Of a stretch of 64,000 nt of DNA, positions 1 to 59,387 are shown piece after piece. Position 1 is the stretch's first letter, and each line of letters opens with the position of its first letter. The notes under the pieces were generated by a model. It was given only the letters and a program-made list of their open reading frames with translations. It was not told the DNA's origin and did not search any database. Origin of the DNA: Salpingoeca rosetta (lineage: Eukaryota; Protista; Choanoflagellata); assembly GCA_033442325.1 (NCBI GenBank), contig JAWQFM010000001.1, positions 2,316,973 through 2,380,972 on the forward strand. The letters are read 5' to 3'. The translations under genes were made by a program, and so were the position numbers.

Positions 1-124
1 GTGTACGTGCGCGTGTGCGTTGCTTGGGCCACCCATCAACGATTGTGTGAGTACAACAATGTGTGAGATCTGTGAACATCGTGCTCATCAATGACTGTAT
101 CTGAATCACCACGCTTTACCACAG

Positions 125-46669: not shown

Positions 46670-47941
46670 TTATTGCTGTTGTTGTTCTGCTTCGTCGTAG
46701 ACAAAGCTGTGCGACTTCCACTTCTCCCTGTTCTTGTTCTTCGACAGTGTGGAGTGGGAGGATATGTGCTGGGCGAGGTTTGGGATGAGCTCAAAGTTCC
46801 TCAGCCTGAGCATGGCGCCAAAGTATCCTGGGATGAGCCAGTCCACGGGCCGCTCGAGCTTGTTCTCAAGCAAAAAGTCTGCGAGCCCAGGCACGTGCTT
46901 GCGGTGCATGAGCAGGGCCACTGCACCGTGCCGCCCGTCCCCGCCGTGGAACCAGCCCTCGTCGTCCTTGGCCGTGAGCTCGCGCCACGGCGCTGGCGGG
47001 GGCGGGTTCAGCCCGCTGTACAGCGACACGTACCCAAAGTCCTGCGTGGGCAAGGCGCTGATGCGGTTGAACATCTTGGTGGTGAAGTTCTTGGCCGGCG
47101 ACGCGTCGTCCTCCAGCAGCAGCACGTGCGTGACATTGAACTCTGCGCACCGCTTGAGGGTCATGGCAAAGTCGGCGACCTGGCGCGATCGCCACCGCAC
47201 GCGGTCAATCGGATCGCCGAGGGTCAGCTTGATGTCCGGTGCGTTGAGGTCCTTCCAGCCAACCGTGTCCACCTCCACCACAAAGCCGAGCTGCCGCGCA
47301 TACTGTCGCTGCTGGACGTTGTTGCGGGCAGAGTATGCCTGGCGAAGCACGACCCTGTCCTTGTGGCCGTCAATCTCTTCCCGGAGGGATTTGAGGCGGG
47401 AGAGGATGAGGTCCATGGGTGCGCCGGGGCGGGCAGCCGAGGGCACGGCAATGCACAGTCTGCGCGGATCCCGCTCGCTGATGGAATGGCTGAATGCGTC
47501 GTCGTCGTCCTCCGACTCTGCCGGTGCAGCCTTGGCGGGTTGATCTTGCTGCTGCTGGCCTTGCGCATGCTGGGGCCCTCCTTGGTGCTGTTGGTGTTGC
47601 TCGATGTTGTGCTTGAGTTGTTCTTGCTGGACAGCCTGGTCATCCAAGGCGGCACTGAGGGCCTTGAAGGCGCCCTGGAGTTGTTGCACCATATGTGTGA
47701 GCTGATCCACGCTCTGGCCTAGAGCGTCGTCAACATCTCCCCGCGCACCGCGTGCGCCGTGTGCACTGGCATCACTGCCGGCGACGAGCGCTGCGCCTCC
47801 AGTCTGTTGCGAGTACTGTAGGGTGGTCTGTAGCTGCTTCACCGTATCGCTCATGGCGTTGAGGCGCGCCTGCATCACAAGCAGCACGATGACGATCATC
47901 GCCGCCACGGCAGCCACCACAACCCCTTGCAATCGCGCCAT
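46670..47941 (-). CDS. Intronless type II membrane glycosyltransferase, MGAT4/GT54-like
   Basis: N-terminal signal-anchor and coiled stem; LCIAVPSAAR, WRSRQVADF, VLLLEDD, PVDWL and PNLAQHISSHSTL parallel MGAT4 motifs (IGIPTVxR, WRxKQNLD, QLEDD, PIDWL, PSLFQHVGxHSSL). Confidence 0.75.
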   Translation of the reverse strand: MARLQGVVVAAVAAMIVIVLLVMQARLNAMSDTVKQLQTTLQYSQQTGGAALVAGSDASAHGARGARGDVDDALGQSVDQLTHMVQQLQGAFKALSAALDDQAVQQEQLKHNIEQHQQHQGGPQHAQGQQQQDQPAKAAPAESEDDDDAFSHSISERDPRRLCIAVPSAARPGAPMDLILSRLKSLREEIDGHKDRVVLRQAYSARNNVQQRQYARQLGFVVEVDTVGWKDLNAPDIKLTLGDPIDRVRWRSRQVADFAMTLKRCAEFNVTHVLLLEDDASPAKNFTTKMFNRISALPTQDFGYVSLYSGLNPPPPAPWRELTAKDDEGWFHGGDGRHGAVALLMHRKHVPGLADFLLENKLERPVDWLIPGYFGAMLRLRNFELIPNLAQHISSHSTLSKNKNREKWKSHSFVYDEAEQQQQ

Positions 47942-48446: not shown

Positions 48447-49007
48447 TCACTCAAACTCTGGGTTTGCCTTGAGCCACCTCTTGTACTGCTTGTACTTGGC
48501 TGCGTGTGGGCACAGGACAAAGTGTTGGACGGGGAACGCGGGGGGGGGGGGATGAGGGCGACGTGTGGAATGGTTTGAGTGTGTTGAGTGTTGATGATGT
48601 TGAGTGGAGTTTGGGTGTGCGATAAGTGTGTTGAGCGTCTCGAGTGTGCAGTTGCGGATGCTAGCACAACAGCACAGTGCAGTGACAGATGATGGTACAG
48701 CAGCACAGGACAAGGTACAGATGCTGGTACAACGGAACAGTGCAGTGTACAAGTGCAAGGGGTGAACGTACTGCTCTTCAGAAGGCGCCGTCGCTCCTCC
48801 ATCTCCTGGTTCTGCTGGTATTTTTTTGCCTTGGCCGCATCCCAGCAATGCTGCGCCCACACCTCCGCCCGAAACCCGGGGTTGGACTCGCACAGGTACT
48901 ACCATGCCACAAACGCACGTGTCAGCATATGCGTGAGCGCTCAAACGTGTGTGCATGCGAGCATGTGTGTATGCATTCATGTAGGGTGGACTGGGCTCAC
49001 GCCTGCT

Positions 49008-49056
<49 letters not shown>

Positions 49057-49524
49057 TGCACGCGGCTGCCTCACCTCATACTTCCCCTGAGAGAGCCCCA
49101 GGTTGCGTCGGATGAGGTATTCCTTGTCTTCCTCCGTCGGCTCTTCTCGCTTGAACGTCAGGCGGTAATGCCAGCTCACTACCCACGCAACATACTGCGC
49201 AATCGTGTATGGCCTTGGAGCAGATGTTGTCGTGCGTGTTGGGCAGCATCGCAGCGAGTCAGCACATGGGGCAAACGAGAGCGGGGAGATGGGGGGGGGG
49301 GTTACGATGAGAACACAGATGCGCGCGTTTTAATACAAACGCAATCATAAACAACGTTATGCACCTCAACAACTCCCAACATGGCAACTAACAGCATGAC
49401 GATGCGGCAGGCGAGCAAGCTCTGTATCGAGGGTGGGCCGTAGTCGCCGCGCAGATCAACCATCTCTAGTACCGCAGCACTCACAAGCGCCTCCTTATCC
49501 GCCTGGCATCATGTACACGAACAC

Positions 49525-49571
<47 letters not shown>

Positions 49572-49897
49572 CACACACACGCACACACACACACACGCAC
49601 ACACACACACGCGTGTACACCCGCAGGGTGTAGTCAGTCCCGAGAAGCGGCCAAGAAGAGAGAGGGGGGAATGTGTGCGCAGCGCATGCCTCGAATCCCA
49701 CAAACACACGCACACACACACACAACGAAGCACGGAGCGTCGACTGACCTTTGACTTTGCCTGCTTCCACCGGCCATCATCCAAGACAACCCGCTTTGCT
49801 TTTCGACGCAAGTGCTCGTTCTGTGTCGCCAGATCCTTCATCGTCGCATGGTATCGCCACTGGTTAAAATACTGGAGTTTGGTGCGATTTTGCGTAC

Positions 49898-49928
<31 letters not shown>

Positions 49929-50024
49929 TATTCATGTGTGCGTGTGTGTGTGTGTGTTTATGTGTGCGTGTGTGGGGGGAGGGAACCGGTACATGTAAGA
50001 TTTCTGCTTTCAGAGGCATGACGC

Positions 50025-50107
<83 letters not shown>

Positions 50108-51103
50108 CAGACAGACAGACACACACACACAGACAGACAGACACACACACACACACAGACACACACACACACACAGACAGACAGACAGACACACAGACAC
50201 AGACAGACACACGCGCACGCACACGCAGCGACTGCCTGGTACCTGAAAAGCGGAAATGACGCTGATAAATGTGATGATGACCGGCATCACATCCACTTTG
50301 GGGGCAGCACGACGCTTGTAGTAGCGGTAGATATTCGCATAGTACTCGTCTGCACCACAACGAAACGAAAACACGCACAAACAAACACGCACAAGCAACC
50401 AAACAAACAAACAAACAAACACGTGAGGGAAGAGCAATGGCAAAGACAGCAGTGACAATAGCAAGCTAGGCCGCATGCAGTCGTGCTTCAACTTCACCTG
50501 GGTGTTCGAGGAAGTAGTCGTACTCCTTGCGCATGTCGGCATCCTTCAGGACCTCGTATGCGTTGGCAACTTTGTGGAACTGCTCGGCGGCATCCTCAGC
50601 CTTGTTTCGGTCCGGATGAAGCACGCGGGCTTGTCGCCGATACGCTTTGCTAATTTCCGACTGCAAGTGCCCAATGTCCGTGCGGGAGACCAAGTGTCCA
50701 GGACGAGAAAGAAAAATAAACACAAACGGGAATGACGAAAAGAAAAGGAGGAATGTTAAGTGCCTTGAGAAGAGATCGAAAGCGCACGCTTGTACAAATG
50801 CACATATCCACACGTGCAACCGTCACACAAAGATACAATGATGCAAACACACATGCACGCTCACATATGCAAGTTCACCTTCGCACACACGCTCACACAC
50901 ACAAATTCAAATTCACACACCCACACATACATACGCAAACACGCACACACCTGGGATGCTGTGCGGTCAACACCAAGGATGTCATAGCAGTTGTCATCGC
51001 CGCAGTAGATGAACATCTGAGCACTGGTGCCGTGCAGCACAGCCAACAGCAGCAGCAGCACGGCCGCTGCCGCCGCCTGTGTCGTTGTTGCCTGAGTCCT
51101 CAT
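48447..51103 (-). CDS. DNAJC25: DnaJ homolog subfamily C member 25-like ER membrane co-chaperone
   Basis: Signal peptide; [13 protein letters not shown]; [13 protein letters not shown]; YEVLKD..RKEYDY; YYRYY-like stretch before PKVDV and a TM; [12 protein letters not shown]; [10 protein letters not shown]. Confidence 0.9.
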
Positions 51104-51298
51104 GGTCGTGAGTCACTCGAAAATCGCTGAAAGATATCCACTAATCGCCACGACTTGGCTGGCGTTGGAGGACAACAACTGCAAGCAAGAAGCAAAGCAA
51201 AGCAAAGCAAAGGCAAAAGCAAGCGACATACACCTCCACATCCACTCCCAACTCACATCAACGCCGAAGACGACGACAGACGACGACGACGAAGCGCG
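51104..51298. promoter_or_regulatory. Probable bidirectional promoter, DNAJC25/TM-RhoGEF
   Basis: Divergent ATGs separated by 195 bp; central (GCAAA)n tract. Confidence 0.55.
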
Positions 51299-52043
51299 AT
51301 GCTTTCGGCAACACAACGCGTGTGGCTTGGCGTGGTGTTTGCAGATGCCATCACCTTTGTCATCCTCGCAGCCGTGAGTTCCCATCACCAGCCATGCTTC
51401 AGAGGCGTTTGATTTTGTTTTGGCTCCTTCCGTCCGTTGGACCATTGCTTTGATCGGTGTTGAGCCATGTTCTGTCGCTGACACACGGTTTTGCCTGGCA
51501 CCCAGCCTTTTACACACAGACACACAGATGGGAACAAGCAGACGCGCACACAGACACACAGCTACACACGCACACACACGCACATACACATTCGCTCATG
51601 CTGCTCACACCACTTGTGGATCCACACAGGTGCTGGGCGCAAGCTCAAAGTTTGTGTTCAACTTGGCCAAGTACAGCGTCTCTGCAAACGTGACAGATAT
51701 TCTGCTGGTCCGTGCTTCCGCAACTTGCGTGTTGATGTGAAAGTGTGCGCTTCAACAGCACCTCATGCATGATATAAGGTTTTGTCTTGCCCACACCTAT
51801 CTCTTCGCTGAGAGGTCATTGCTTGACCTGTCCGCTTCGCTCCGCCGTCGTGCTCACCCCAGCCCATCCAACACTGCCTTTGCTTTGCAGCTGTCGTTGT
51901 TGCGGTCGCTCATTCAAGTCGGGCTGGATGTGCTTCGCTTCATCTTCAGTGTCGACTCCAAGGCACTCACCTGGTGCACCGTCATCATGGAGGGCGTCTG
52001 CCTCGCCTTTGCTTGCTACAAGGTTTGTGCCTGGACGTGCTGG

Positions 52044-52092
<49 letters not shown>

Positions 52093-52420
52093 GGGGAAGT
52101 GATGTCTTAAGACATGCACAAGCGCTGCTAAACAAGTGACCCGCTGTTGCTTCAGATGGTTGTGGTGCATCCGCACATGGCGCCCGGCCCCGTTGGCGCC
52201 AATGATGCGGTGCTGGTCCTCTCGGTGATCTTCCCTGCCCTCCATTTGATCAACCTCATCCTCACCCCGTGGTTCGAGGACACATCCGAACAAAAGGTTT
52301 GTTGCCTCGGCGACACGAAGCACATGCACAATCTCAACGTCCCGCACTGCGTGTCACGCTGCACGAACACACGAACACACACACACACGCACACGCACAC
52401 ACATTAACTCACACGCGCAG

Positions 52421-52456
<36 letters not shown>

Positions 52457-53410
52457 GCACACACACACACACACACTATCGCCTGCAGGCTGCGGAGCGC
52501 CGGCCGCTGCTGAGCCCGGCCGGACGGGCGGTGCCCTCAACTGCAGAGAGCAGATTTACGCGCACGAGCGAGTCGGTGCGCTACCAGTCCACCACCGTCG
52601 CCGTGGTGGTTGGCGACAAGAACAACAACAACACCAACAACAACAACAGCCACAGCACTGCTCATACAGCCACTGCGCAACAGACCGCCCCGCCGCCACG
52701 ACCACCGCCGCCAAAGTGGGGACAATCCTCGTGTCGGCAGTCGCTGTTGTTGTACTTGAGTCTTTGTTGGTGTAGGCTGTGCTGGTCTGGCTTTTCGGCG
52801 TTCGGTGTTGCTGTTGCTGTCGGTGTTGGTGTTGCTGCTGCTGCTGCTTTGTTCGTCTCAAACGTTACCTTGACGCACTGACTTGCTGCATATACTCCAT
52901 AATGCCGCCCGTTCAATGCACATGTTTGTGCGTGTGTGTACATGTGTTTCCCAGACTTCATCCGGAGACTACAGCGCAGTCGCACGCTGCTGCTCCCGAT
53001 GATGATGATGACTACGATGAGGACTATGATGACGGTGGTGTTGCGGATCGCAATGCGGTGACTCACGCGCTGACCAGCGAAGCGGCAGCATTGGTGCCAG
53101 GCGGAAGCCACGGCCATGGCCAAGACACATTTACGGACACGCGCGCAGCCCGTGGCGACTGGGGCGATGTTGCTGTGGCGGCAGAAGCCATGGGGGAGGA
53201 GGAGGAAGAGAAGGAAGGTGTTGCTGATGCACTTCAGGTAACGGTCCAGCTCCAAGCGCAGGAAGAAGAAGAAGAAGAGCAAGAAGAGCAGGAGCAAGAG
53301 GATGAAGAAGAGCAAGAGCAAGAGCAAGAGGGAGAGGAGGAGGAGGAGCAGGAGGGGGAGGAGCAGGAGGAGCAGGAGGAGCAGGAGGAGGAGGAGGAGG
53401 AGGAGGAGGC

Positions 53411-53506
<96 letters not shown>

Positions 53507-56154
53507 GCAGCAGCAGCAGCAAACGAGCAGTGCCATTGCGGCTGGCTTGTCGAGCGATGAATTTTCGCAACGCGTTCAGCACCACAACGCCAGCGGTGAC
53601 GACGATGCTGGTGGTGATGTGTTGGATGAGGAGTTTCATGATGCGCTTGATGCGATGCACGATGCCAGTGAGCCCGCTGCTGATGCCGGTAACGACGGGG
53701 ATGGTGGTGGTGACGGCGATGATGATGGGGATGGTGATGGTGCTGCTGATGATGACGCTGATGATGACGCTGATGATGATGATGGGGATGGGGATGACAT
53801 AACAGCACAACAACCGACAGCACAAGCCTCGACGACGCAGGAAGCGGCAGCACAAGAAGCAACGACGCAACCCGGACAAAGTGCTAACGGCGATGAGCAG
53901 AGCGGTGCTGCGCCTGACACAGACAGCAGCGGCCGTCCAGTTGTTGACGACCACGATGACATTGACGTTGACACGTTCGATGCAGCAGCCGATGCGCCAC
54001 CACACGACAAGAACGCGCCCGCTCCGAGCCGCCCCATCGTTATCCGCGCTGCCTCGATGCCTTCCATCAACCCAACAGGTCTGCAGAACCGTGTGGAGAG
54101 GGTGCACGTATGAGTGTGAATGGGCGTTGGGAATGAATGAGAGACTGTTTGGTTGTTTGGTTGTTTGTTTGGTTGTTTAGTTGTTTGTTTCTTGTTTGTG
54201 TGTGTGTGTGGATGTTATGAATGTGCGTACATGTGTGTGTGTTCATATGCACATGTTCGCAGCGGTCAAGGCTGCCTGCTTCTGCTATGTTGTTCGTTCA
54301 ATTCTTTGTGTCCCGCGTGCTGACTCCACCGCCATGCCACTGCATTGCTGCATGACATTGCTGCATGATCTGTTCTTCAGCGGTTCAACACGAGCTCATT
54401 CTTGCGAACAAGCCCGACATTCCGCCGCAGCGCGATGACGGTGAGTTGTCCATGGCAGAGACGACGGAAGAGATGTGCACATGCTTGGCTGCTGCTGCTG
54501 GGCCACATTGTATGCTCTGCTTCACGACGAACTTTGCAATGTGTGTGCACACGCACGCATCCACGCACATTCACGCACACGCACACGCATACACGCACGC
54601 ATGCACACGCACGCGTGTGCACAAACCCTCTAACACACTCACATACACGCTGACGCACTCACGTCCTCGCACTCTCCCCCACGCACATACACTGCGCACC
54701 AAACTGCGATCAGAAACGGAAGAAGAAAAGAATTACCGAAAGCGGATGTTGATTGTTGGGGAAATTGTCAGCACGGAGGAAAGGTGGGCGACACAACCCA
54801 ACAGTGTCTTCGTTCACAATACGCGGCACAACCATGTTATGTTCTCCTTTCTTGTTTGGTTCTTCCACCCCATGCACACGTCACGCGACAACCTCACGCT
54901 GTCTGCTACTTGCTGTCTGCTGTCTGCGCATCTCTGTTGCATCTCTGTCACTCACACCTACTCGCTCTTCATCGTTTCGTCCATGCATGCGGCTCACGAT
55001 CCGTGTCGCTGCACGGTTTGAACATCTCTCGCTCGCTCGTGTACAGCTTTGTGACCACGCTGCACATGCTGAACGACGTCTTCATCAAGCCGCTGCAGGA
55101 CCGCGCAGACGCACACGCGGACGGGGACGGCCCGCACGTCACGCACAAGCAGATCAACGCCATGTTCCCCGAGGTGCAGCCGCTGATCAAGGTGAACACC
55201 ATACTGCTGCGGCGCCTGCAGGACCGCTACCAGCACTGGCACCCGGCCCAGAAGATTGGAGGTGCGTCCCCCTGCCCAACGACCTCTTGTTGATGAATTG
55301 AGTCGAGCACAGTCCGTGATGGTGCTGATGGTCGTGATGGGTGGGAGATGATGGTGGTGATATGAGGAGGGACGTTGATGCGTTGTGGAGGAGAGGGCGT
55401 TTGGTCGCTGCCGTGTGATGCCGTTGCAGTTGCTTCGGCATGCTTCTCGCATTGCATCCAAACCTAGCAAAGGAACTGACCGCCCACCGCGCATGCACAC
55501 GTGTGTGCATTGATGCCCTGCTTTGCGTGCGACGTGTGCGATGTGTCCAGACGTGTTTTGCCAGGTGCTGCCGTACCTGAACCACTTCAACATGTATGCG
55601 AGCAGCTTTGATGCCGCTCTCTCCACCGTCGCCGCCTGCAAGGAACAGCCCTCCTTCCGCGACTTTCTCCTGTGCGCCCATCCACCTGTTACTGTTTGTG
55701 TTGTGCTGTGCTGCGTATGTGTGTGCGTGCGTGCTGTGCTGCGTGTGTGTATATGTGTGCGTGCGTGTGACTGATGTGAACTCCTTGCATCTGATAGCTT
55801 GTTCCTGTATCGCATTGTGATAGGCGAGCAATGTTGTGTTGTGTTGCTTCCCACCACCCTGAATACCATCACACGTGCTGACACACATACACACACACAC
55901 ACACACATACATGCACACACACACTCTCACACACTCACACTCACAACCATCACCACGATGCATGGGCACGAGAGCAGGCAGTGCCGGCAGGACCCGCGGT
56001 GCGAGAAGTTGTGGCTTGAGGACCACCTGATCACGCCCGTGCAGCGCGTTCCACGCTATCGCCTCCTCCTCGCGGACCTCCTCAGCAAGACCCCGGCCTC
56101 TCACCCCGACCACGACCACATTGCACTGGTAGCACTCTGCCTCACTGCACTTGC

Positions 56155-56201
<47 letters not shown>

Positions 56202-56976
56202 TGTGTGTGTGTGTGTGTCTGTGTGTGTGTGTGTCTGTGTGTGTGTGTGTCTGTTAGATCAAATGGTGGTTGCGGCCTCTTGGCGTTCAGCACAGCGACA
56301 CACTTGACCTTTCTTCTCCAACCCTCATCTTCATTCACCTTCGCCCTTCATTCACCACTACCACCACCATCATCATCGTCGTCCTCGTCCTCGTCACCTC
56401 AACAGGCGTTGCGGCAAGTGGAAGAGCTTGCCTCAAACATTAACATGAAGAAGAAGCAGTTTGAGTCGAGGTGAGCGCTCCTTGGTGTTCCTTTCCCTTC
56501 ACCGTCTCCTCATTCATTCATGCAGACACCACTCACGCTTCCACCTACCTCCTACCACTGCCGACGCTGACGCCACGTTTGGCTCACCTGCACTGCACTG
56601 CATTGCGCATCAACACGCCACCAACCGGCAGCGTGGCCATTGTCGAGATCCAGCAGAAGGTGAAGCACTGCCCGGAGATTGTGCAGCCATCCCGTCGCCT
56701 CGTCACGCAGCTTGAAGGCACCGAGTTCATTCGCGCAGACCTGCAGGGTAACGATGTTGTGACCACCACCTGTTCTCGCATGCCGCCGCTGTTCTTGTGT
56801 TGCGTTAGGTCGTGTTATATTGCGTTTGTGTACACGCGTAAACGCACGTGCACACATGTGGCGCTGGTGTGCACGTCGAGTGGTTGCGCGTTGCGCTGCA
56901 CCAGTTCTACACATGCTGTTTGTTTCTGTCCACTGCTGGCGTGAAGTCCTGCTCTTCCTCCGTCTCCTCACACACA

Positions 56977-57009
<33 letters not shown>

Positions 57010-58199
57010 TGCCATCTCGCAGACCCAACCACAACGGCAGAAACACCAACAAGCCTCGTTCCTGTACGTTCACACTTGGTACCCATGCACTGTGTCCAGC
57101 ACTGGTTCCCGTATGTATATTAGTCACTGTTGCCAACTGCATGCACTTGCTGTCATCTTTGACAATGTATGTTCACACTCACATGAATGCTCTCTCTCAC
57201 TCTCTCACACACAAATGCACACCAACACACATCCGTGCACAGCATCGATCTGTTGTGATTTATCTGTTCAACAACATGCTTCTGTTGGCAACGCACGAGC
57301 GCGTGGAGAGTCTCTTCGGAAGGTGCGCCGGCATCCCGTGTGCATAGTGCATGTTGCAGAGTGCATGGCGTGTTCGTGTGTGTGGTGCTTGCATCTTTCC
57401 ACTGCTTATCGTGCTCCTGCTGCTGCGATTGTTGTTGCTTGTCCGCTCTGCAAAGGTTACACACAACGATGAAGAATTACTGGCAGAACAACGACTAGTA
57501 AGTGGCGTGAGTGTGTTGTCTGATTCCATGCTTTTCACTTTAGTGATGTTGCCACGCTGTCAGAATCGCTTGCCAAACCAAACACACGTAGACGGCCACG
57601 AAGTACAAATACATCAACACTTGCATTCGCTCACCTTCTGTGCACGTGTTTGTTGTGATGGTGATAGCATGCAGCCGATGACTGAGGAGAACGGCAAGCG
57701 CGTCGTGCACAAGTTCAAGTACATTGACTCTTCAGATCTGCTGGGCGCAGTGGTGCGTACACATGGCGGTGCAGGCAGAATTGGATACGGTGGCAACTTG
57801 CAGCACCGGCTCTTGCCTCCCTCGGTTGTCTGTTTCCTCGTGCCTGCGATGGCTTCGTGCATGTGTCCATGTTTGTTCATATGCGTCTGCTATGTACACG
57901 TGCTTACGCGTGTGCCTCTCTCTCTCTCTCTGTCCCCATGTGCCAGGTGGGCGACTATGAGGACGATCCGCCGCTGTGCAACGCCGATGGTGAGAGTTGT
58001 GGGCTGACCGTCTTCCTGCCAGGAAAGGAGTTCTTTGTTCTCGCAGCGACACCGCGCGATCGCGACACGTAAGCACAACCGCCACGCGGGCAGCAACTAA
58101 CCTGGGGGAGCGGGGGGCGGGGCGGGTGAGAGGGAATGATAGTGATGATTGTGAGCAAGTGGGCTTGCGTACAGACGAACTGACACACACACACACATA

Positions 58200-58275
<76 letters not shown>

Positions 58276-58717
58276 GCACAGGTTCAAAGCAGCGTTCTTG
58301 GAGGCGAAGCAGACACACGCGAGCGACACGTCGCACCTGCCAGCAGAGCGGTTCACGGGCGGAGATGCCGGGTGGCAGCCGCACACGCCGCAGCCACACA
58401 CGCAGCAGACGCGCAGTCGCACACGGCGGGCACGGCGCAAGAGCAAAGGGACGCGACGCGGCAAGCAGGCCGGTGCAGGCGATATGCAGCAGACGCAGAG
58501 GGGGAAGAGCAAGAAGAAGGCAACTGCTGCCACTGCTGCTGTTGCCACTGCAGCAGCGACGGGTGCGGATATGGGCGGCGATGCGGCTGCACCGAAGCTG
58601 TGCTTGGATGGGGTGTACGAGCTTGCATCGGAGACCGTTGTTGACGACGAAACGGGCCAGGGATCTGTGCGGCCGCTCGCCCTCAACCACAACAACACAG
58701 ACGACACAGATGCATGA
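51299..58717 (+). CDS. Multi-pass membrane RhoGEF: 4-TM MENTAL/TMD0-like domain, acidic and poly-Q linker, FGD-like DH-PH
   Basis: Phase-compatible GT-AG exons 51299-51373, 51630-51707, 51891-52022, 52156-52296, 52489-52715 and 52955-~54078 lead into DH motifs KRMLIVGEIVSTE, LITPVQRVPRYRLLLADLL..TP..HPD and PH motif IYLFNNMLL; stop at 58715-58717. Confidence 0.75.
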
Positions 58718-59028
58718 TCCCACTTTTGTGCGCGTGTGTATGCGTGTGTATGCGTGTGTATGCGTGTGTGCGTGTGTGTATTTGTCAATAGTCACAAACG
58801 TTGATGTACTTGGTGTGCCTTCCATGATTCTTGCTCAACCCATATCCTATGTGACCTGAACTGACAGTGAGTGGGCTGTGTGCGGGTTTTAATGTCACTG
58901 CGCGGTTACTTGGTGACTTGTTTACTCATGTGTATAGTGAGTGGGTGCGCACTCATGTCAAATTGAGTGCACCAGAACAAAACGCAAAACCCATGCATGG
59001 ACCAAATGTCAACGGCACTGACGCGGCC

Positions 59029-59093
<65 letters not shown>

Positions 59094-59132
59094 CAGAGAC
59101 ACAAACGCACGCAAACAGAGGCACACGCGCTG

Positions 59133-59387
59133 CTACCATCGCTCTAACTCGTGTGGATATATGTCTCTTCCGAGCGGTTTCATCTTCACCTTCCCCGTGT
59201 CGCGGCTGAGGGACTTGCGCATATCTGCATGAGCACGGCCGGCATCGCACGTGGTGTGAGCGTGGTAAGACAGCTCAAACAGATACGGCAGCAGTGATGG
59301 AAGGATAGGCATACCAGCATACATAACCCTCACACACATATACCAGAGCACATTCAAGCGCCACACGAACATAACACACACACAGAG

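Follow-up and report, generated by a model that had tools for sequence, protein, structure and literature searches.

Can a Rho guanine nucleotide exchange factor (RhoGEF, or GEF) be built permanently into a membrane by helices of its own? Dbl-family GEFs usually reach membranes reversibly, via lipid-binding or adaptor domains, and the question was raised by a gene of the choanoflagellate Salpingoeca rosetta, located at 51299–58717 (+) of a 64,000-nucleotide (nt) stretch of genome (assembly GCA_033442325.1, contig JAWQFM010000001.1, positions 2,316,973 to 2,380,972 of the forward strand). This whole stretch is called the window, and coordinates refer to it. A preliminary description made from the sequence had proposed for this gene a four-transmembrane N-terminal anchor of endolysosomal type fused to a DH-PH module. 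The analysis presented here makes it probable that a single expressed S. rosetta gene encodes an integral-membrane exchange factor of the Dbl family, whose activity would be confined to the compartment of its anchor.

The gene model was built from 50800–59200 using the translations of the three forward frames, independently of the model in the preliminary description. It consists of 18 exons, all introns being of the GT..AG type, and runs with no internal stop from the ATG at 51299 to the TGA at 58715–58717, giving a coding sequence (CDS) of 3339 nt and a protein of 1112 residues. The entry phases of exons 1 to 8 are 0, 0, 0, 0, 0, 2, 1 and 1, and the in-frame agreement of 18 exons far exceeds what chance would produce. 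The exon boundaries, phases and peptide strings quoted in the preliminary description were all recovered at the same positions, and its first five exons are identical to those of the new model. No upstream ATG was read in the 5′ untranslated region (UTR) at 51155–51298, so that the first AUG of the mRNA is the one at 51299. A 42-nt mini-exon at 57456–57497, with an AG acceptor and a GTAAGT donor and keeping the frame between exons 15 and 16, was considered and excluded, because the length annotated publicly equals exactly that of the model minus exon 3 (see below).

The joining of these exons was followed in RNA data. Three raw stranded RNA sequencing (RNA-seq) runs of S. rosetta were found by run search; two raw stranded runs and two contig sets were mapped on 51050–57049, the interval over which RNA support extends, and the joints downstream (exons 14–18) rest on the gene model. 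The contig sets are presumed to be of transcripts, their shared-word fraction of 0.37–0.46 being equal to the exon fraction of the stretch, as transcript contigs would give. Joints with GT..AG borders were present in reads and contigs at 51373/51630, 51707/51891, 52022/52156, 52715/52955, 54078/54381, 54440/54714, 54783/55047, 55261/55551, 55671/55978 and 56470/56632. The joint 52296/52489 lies inside contig X5-7 and is absent from the joint list, its intron being a CA repeat and repeats having been dropped from that list; the joint 56128/56406, whose intron is a GT repeat, is likewise missing from the list and was taken from the gene model. At joint 56747/57023, loose read ends at 56747 match the first 30 bases of exon 14. 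Nearly all of the reads had the orientation expected for RNA of the forward strand, and over the anchor exons all of them were sense.

Two contigs carry most of this evidence. X5-7 (1231 nt) starts with about 144 nt of 5′UTR, passes through exons 1–5 and enters exon 6 up to 53251, and X5-8 (916 nt), which begins in exon 6 at about 53508, crosses exons 7 and 8 and enters exon 9 of the DH domain. The junctions that the preliminary description had singled out for checking were all spanned: 52296/52489 in X5-7, 52715/52955 by reads, and the passage from the linker to the DH domain in X5-8. RNA terminating upstream of about 52950, combined with an independent GEF start, had been named there as evidence against the proposal; the data do not show it, and X5-7 extends beyond that point. 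The RNA joints and contigs thus document one transcription unit, in which an N-terminal multi-pass hydrophobic anchor is followed by a DH domain, as had been proposed.

In the public S. rosetta assembly GCA_000188695.1 (contig GL832955.1), a single gene is annotated from the base equivalent to 51299, with a product of 1068 residues. Removal of exon 3, which has 44 codons and is in phase 0 at either end, from the 1112-residue model gives 1068 residues exactly, and a query with exon 3 against 1.84 billion representatives returned no protein of this gene and no relative, only a junk tandem-repeat protein. Judged from the length and from this search, the public gene model probably skips exon 3. 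The coincidence of the two lengths further suggests that annotation and model share the remaining 17 exons, the acceptor at 57668 included. A word-indexed protein search with the unique part of the exon-6 open frame gave no match. In the RNA data used here exon 3 is included, since no joint between exons 2 and 4 was found among those listed. Its omission would take away helix 3 entirely and one half of helix 2, and a public model apparently devoid of this transcript-supported 44-residue exon would keep the anchor hidden from domain surveys.

The N-terminus of the protein is hydrophobic. Helices were sought with Kyte-Doolittle windows of 19 residues above 1.4 in the first 260 residues, and with a summed Hessa insertion energy below 3 kcal/mol over the whole protein; the segments that passed were confined to residues 8–134 of the 1112. 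Helix 1 (best window 9–27), helix 3 (76–94) and helix 4 (113–131) are clearly hydrophobic. Of the four helices in the preliminary description these three are strong, and four transmembrane segments are likely only, as helix 2 is marginal. Two topologies are possible: four helices with the N-terminus inside, or three helices with a seven-residue N-terminus in the lumen, in which case helix 2 would lie along the cytosolic face. The charge distribution of the anchor is compatible with both, and either topology would place the GEF in the cytosol.

The DH domain was recognized by the Pfam RhoGEF family (PF00621) in exon 9 with 30.2 bits (E = 6e-07) and in exon 11 with 57.8 bits (E = 2e-15), the cut-off being 27.6. 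The CR1 region (STEESF, exon 8/9) and the CR3 region (LITPVQRVPRYRLLLADLL, exon 11) are both intact in the alignment to intersectin-1; exchange requires these motifs, whose patterns are TE..[YF] for CR1 and PVQR.PRY.LLL for CR3. The spliced residues 622–845 scored 132 bits against a local profile of four FGD-like metagenome relatives, up to the first PH strand. In the PDB, exon 11 was most similar to intersectin-1/2 and then to FGD6, and exon 9 alone had no match. Judged from these comparisons, the domain is an ordinary Dbl-family member near the intersectin and FGD groups. The region directly following it is weakly indicated to be PH-like. Against the PH domains of the relatives it gave two weak collinear local matches (hmmsearch 1.2 bits, hhalign probability 0.5%), which fall in the correct order, with YLFNNMLLL on the β3-β4 motif and then the last two strands plus the helix; the position of the signature Trp is occupied by Phe. 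Of the DH-PH module announced in the preliminary description, the DH half is thus secured by Pfam and by CR1 and CR3, and the PH half has weak matches.

Between the anchor and the DH domain lies a flexible segment of about 460 residues, in which ERRPLL, an Asn-rich stretch, PPPRPPPPK and an acidic, polyE- and polyQ-containing exon of about 375 residues follow one another. Residues 135–150 read WFEDTSEQKAAERRPLL. The motif ERRPLL (residues 145–150) fits the pattern [DE]xxxL[LI] and lies 11 residues past helix 4; the dileucine-type motif reported in the preliminary description is therefore present in the sequence and, short as it is, may point to adaptor-dependent sorting toward endolysosomal compartments. 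A scan of the whole protein for the FFAT-type core found one match, EFHDALD at residues 444–450, preceded by DDDAGGDVLDE. FFAT motifs follow the consensus EFFDAxE, flanked by acidic residues (PMC8306308). EFHDALD lies about 310 residues from the membrane and has His, not Phe, at core position 3, and the strict pattern arose in 1.7% of 20,000 shuffles of the very acidic 458-residue segment at residues 143–600. Docking to the endoplasmic reticulum (ER) through this motif is possible.

Taken together, the protein may work as follows. The N-terminal bundle of residues 8–134, made of three hydrophobic helices and a charged, marginal one, would insert in a membrane and leave everything after residue 135 in the cytosol. 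Through the tether of about 460 residues, Rho-family GTPases on that membrane or close to it would come within range of the intersectin/FGD-type DH domain and its divergent PH-like partner. As a GEF tethered by an integral anchor is confined to the compartment of that anchor, Rho-family GTPases would be activated only where the anchor resides. By ERRPLL this address would be endolysosomal, and its placement on food vacuoles or lysosomes is conjecture. With a natural GEF as a permanent part of a membrane, Rho-GTPase activation would be tied to a single compartment. Choanoflagellates, in which this would occur, are the closest living relatives of animals and rely for their feeding on phagocytosis and vacuole traffic.

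Several observations weigh against an anchored GEF of this kind. The 256-nt repeat at 53252–53507, within exon 6, is bridged by no listed read or contig. Junction reads climb from 5′ to 3′, from about 1–10 over the anchor to 17–46 over the DH domain; so gradual an increase fits 3′ bias, and may also allow a minor soluble isoform with an internal start. Helix 2 (48–70) contains two Arg and two Asp, and passes the Kyte-Doolittle test only, failing the Hessa cut-off. The PH region had no significant profile match with Pfam on single exons or in further profile searches. Finally, no orthologue with the anchor-DH architecture was found by exon-level queries or in the metagenome scan, a scope too narrow to make the fusion unique to S. 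rosetta. The unbridged repeat, together with a coverage two to five times higher in the 3′ half, could also be taken to mean that there is no fusion protein at all, the anchor exons yielding a short membrane protein and the GEF starting separately from an internal site. This is very improbable in our judgment. Beyond the anchor, contig X5-7 continues into exon 6 and meets no stop, and X5-8 begins within the same open exon; the gap between them contains neither a stop codon nor an intron, nor was any clustering of molecule starts reported there. The junction counts, moreover, climb gradually and not in one step, and the annotation shows one gene.

The origin and the address of the anchor leave more room for alternatives. 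The preliminary description had likened it to the MENTAL domain of STARD3 and to TMD0 of ABCB9. Kinship with either was not established: exons 1–4, scanned singly with Pfam at E ≤ 10, matched no family, in pieces of 25–47 residues that give such scans little power, and exons 3 and 4 had no usable match in a protein language-model atlas. With each of the pieces below about 13 bits, close membership of PF10457 (or of another family) can be regarded as ruled out, and distant kinship is little constrained. The anchor could well be a hydrophobic bundle particular to this lineage and without kinship to MENTAL or TMD0, lodged in any membrane (plasma membrane, collar or ER), with ERRPLL and EFHDALD as chance matches in low-complexity sequence. 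We regard this as a serious candidate to which somewhat less than an even chance is given. The lack of profile or language-model matches for the anchor exons agrees with it, as do the lack of a relative of exon 3 among 1.84 billion representatives and the absence of an N-terminal transmembrane region from the long open frames examined among the 24 DH relatives; choanoflagellate genomes are also known for novel domain combinations. However, the fragments searched, of 25–47 residues, are blind to distant homology between transmembrane domains, and the motif spacing over three of the helices would be an odd coincidence. This spacing, Y-x7-DI-x2-L-x3-R, W-x10-AF-x3-K and P-x11-WF-x-D in helices 2–4, is presumably that of human STARD3 and STARD3NL, and serves as a lead only. 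Descent of the anchor from MENTAL is held possible, if on the unlikely side. STARD3 consists of MENTAL, then FFAT, then START (PMC8472075; PMC7705450), and a diverged MENTAL anchor could have been assembled here in the same manner, as a late-endosome anchor, a VAP-binding FFAT and an effector that is a RhoGEF, with Rho signaling at endosome-ER contacts. The order of anchor, FFAT-type motif and C-terminal effector matches STARD3 (PMC8472075), and the single EFHDALD core follows an acidic tract and recurs in 1.7% of shuffled linkers; the spacing in helices 2–4 presumably agrees as well. On the other side, close membership of the family is excluded by the Pfam scans, the FFAT-like motif is about 310 residues from the membrane and not close to the anchor as in STARD3, its position 3 is His instead of Phe, and an acidic linker makes chance matches likelier. 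On balance a STARD3-like build is unlikely. Even more doubtful is its fullest form, in which a pre-animal MENTAL-type anchor and a working FFAT in EFHDALD would put the RhoGEF on endosomes or food vacuoles, docked by VAP to the ER and activating Cdc42/Rac-type GTPases at the contact. If the anchor is MENTAL-like, the MENTAL domain would be older than animals and would have been paired with an effector that is not START.

The proposed integral-membrane exchange factor was also compared with its relatives and with known systems. A metagenome scan with the DH exon 11 gave 24 loci, whose open frames are DH-PH, DH-PH-FYVE (FGD-like), or DH with MORN, cNMP-binding and GRAM domains. No hydrophobic N-terminus was found among the long open frames examined from these loci, and no match to the anchor in any of their frames (best E 0.28). 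One of the metagenome contigs, Ga0058864_1380632 (L002:1-2868), contains a 956-residue frame with RhoGEF, MORN, cyclic-nucleotide-binding and GRAM domains, and the CR3 region of its DH domain shares 80% identity with exon 11. With FGD proteins and intersectin the S. rosetta protein has in common a DH domain with intact CR1 and CR3 and a PH-like region after it, and the metagenome proteins nearest to it are of DH-PH and DH-PH-FYVE type. In contrast to them it lacks FYVE, SH3 and EH domains, its N-terminal helices, integral as predicted, taking the place of lipid-binding domains, and its PH region is too divergent to score, Phe replacing the signature Trp. The MENTAL domain of STARD3 and STARD3NL has four transmembrane helices in about 140–170 residues with both termini in the cytosol, resides in late endosomes, binds cholesterol and forms homo-oligomers. 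To these proteins the S. rosetta protein is alike in a compact N-terminal multi-helix anchor with short loops, an FFAT-like motif and a predicted cytosolic effector, whereas this effector is DH-PH and not START, the linker has about 460 residues instead of a few tens, and the cytosolic N-terminal extension only seven. TMD0 of ABCB9 (TAPL) is an N-terminal four-helix lysosomal targeting module, to which the anchor gave no match of any kind; the resemblance is that proposed in the preliminary description.

Of the Dbl GEFs surveyed across 175 eukaryotes, 13 belong to S. rosetta, and the survey makes no mention of a member with transmembrane segments (PMC5499878). No natural transmembrane or membrane-anchored RhoGEF was found in the literature searched, in which phrase searches led only to engineered constructs and unrelated uses. 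In engineered optogenetic tools, RhoGEF DH domains are reportedly anchored or recruited to a membrane to drive local activation of Rho GTPases. Those are artificial constructs, whereas the S. rosetta locus is a natural gene with what is predicted to be a permanent integral anchor. The features of the gene are collected in Table 1.

Table 1. Features of the putative membrane-anchored RhoGEF gene of S. rosetta, in window coordinates.
Feature	Position	Strand	Basis
5′UTR (minimum extent)	51155..51298	+	Contig X5-7: 144 nt before the ATG, from the exon-3 offset
Exon 1: start codon and most of helix 1, residues 1–25	51299..51373	+	Model; joint 51373/51630 in reads and contigs; public CDS from the same base
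Exon 2: end of helix 1, loop 1 and start of helix 2, residues 26–51	51630..51707	+	Joints 51373/51630 and 51707/51891 in RNA data
Exon 3: remainder of helix 2 and helix 3, residues 52–95	51891..52022	+	Both joints in 6–10 reads and contigs
Exon 4: loop 3, helix 4 and juxtamembrane WFED, residues 96–142	52156..52296	+	Linked to exon 5 by contig X5-7
Exon 5: ERRPLL (52495–52512), Asn-rich stretch and PPPRPPPPK	52489..52715	+	Joint 52715/52955 in 5 and 19 reads
Exon 6: acidic/polyE/polyQ linker of about 375 residues, predicted disordered	52955..54078	+	Frame open throughout; contigs X5-7 and X5-8
GAG/CAA repeat in exon 6	53252..53507	+	Only stretch with no bridging contig or read; depth near 0; repeats skipped in mapping
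FFAT-like motif EFHDALD, residues 444–450, acidic tract before it	53631..53651	+	Sole pattern match in the protein
DH (RhoGEF) domain, exons 8–13, residues 622–845	54714..56747	+	Pfam PF00621 on exons 9 and 11; PDB matches; local profile 132 bits
PH-like region (weakly indicated), exon 13 to start of exon 18, about residues 838–978	56632..58330	+	Position after DH; two weak collinear matches
Exon 18: end of PH-like region, polybasic stretch, acidic C-terminus and TGA	58282..58717	+	Gene model

Additional signals in the RNA data were noted. Many reads and high-depth contigs terminate at 52818–52848 and at 52997. The loose read ends at 52818, 52848 and 52997 were examined as alternative exons and rejected: the window contains their sequences at no place, and the ends lie over low-complexity GCT/GTT/GAT DNA, so that they are read as cross-mapping from other loci. 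Positions 54175 and 56856, both intronic, are joined to each other in opposite strand orientation by 11 reads of one run and 13 of the other; either an inverted element is common to both introns or the reads were caught from a repeat elsewhere, and the link is unexplained. All RNA reads differ from the window at 56839 and 56841 (intron 13) and at 52821 (intron 5), with T>C, A>T and C>T, respectively; these are likely strain differences or, at 52821, reads of another locus.

Upstream, the RhoGEF gene is arranged head to head with a DnaJ gene (324 residues, PF00226) at 48447–51103 (−), whose ATG is at 51103. The two start codons are 195 base pairs apart and the RhoGEF 5′UTR comes as close as about 50 nt to the DnaJ ATG, so that the intergenic stretch looks like a compact bidirectional promoter. 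Further along, at 46673–47941 (−), an intronless gene encodes a type II membrane protein of 423 residues with a weak match to MGAT4 (PF04666), identical to an annotated S. rosetta protein (GL832955.1).

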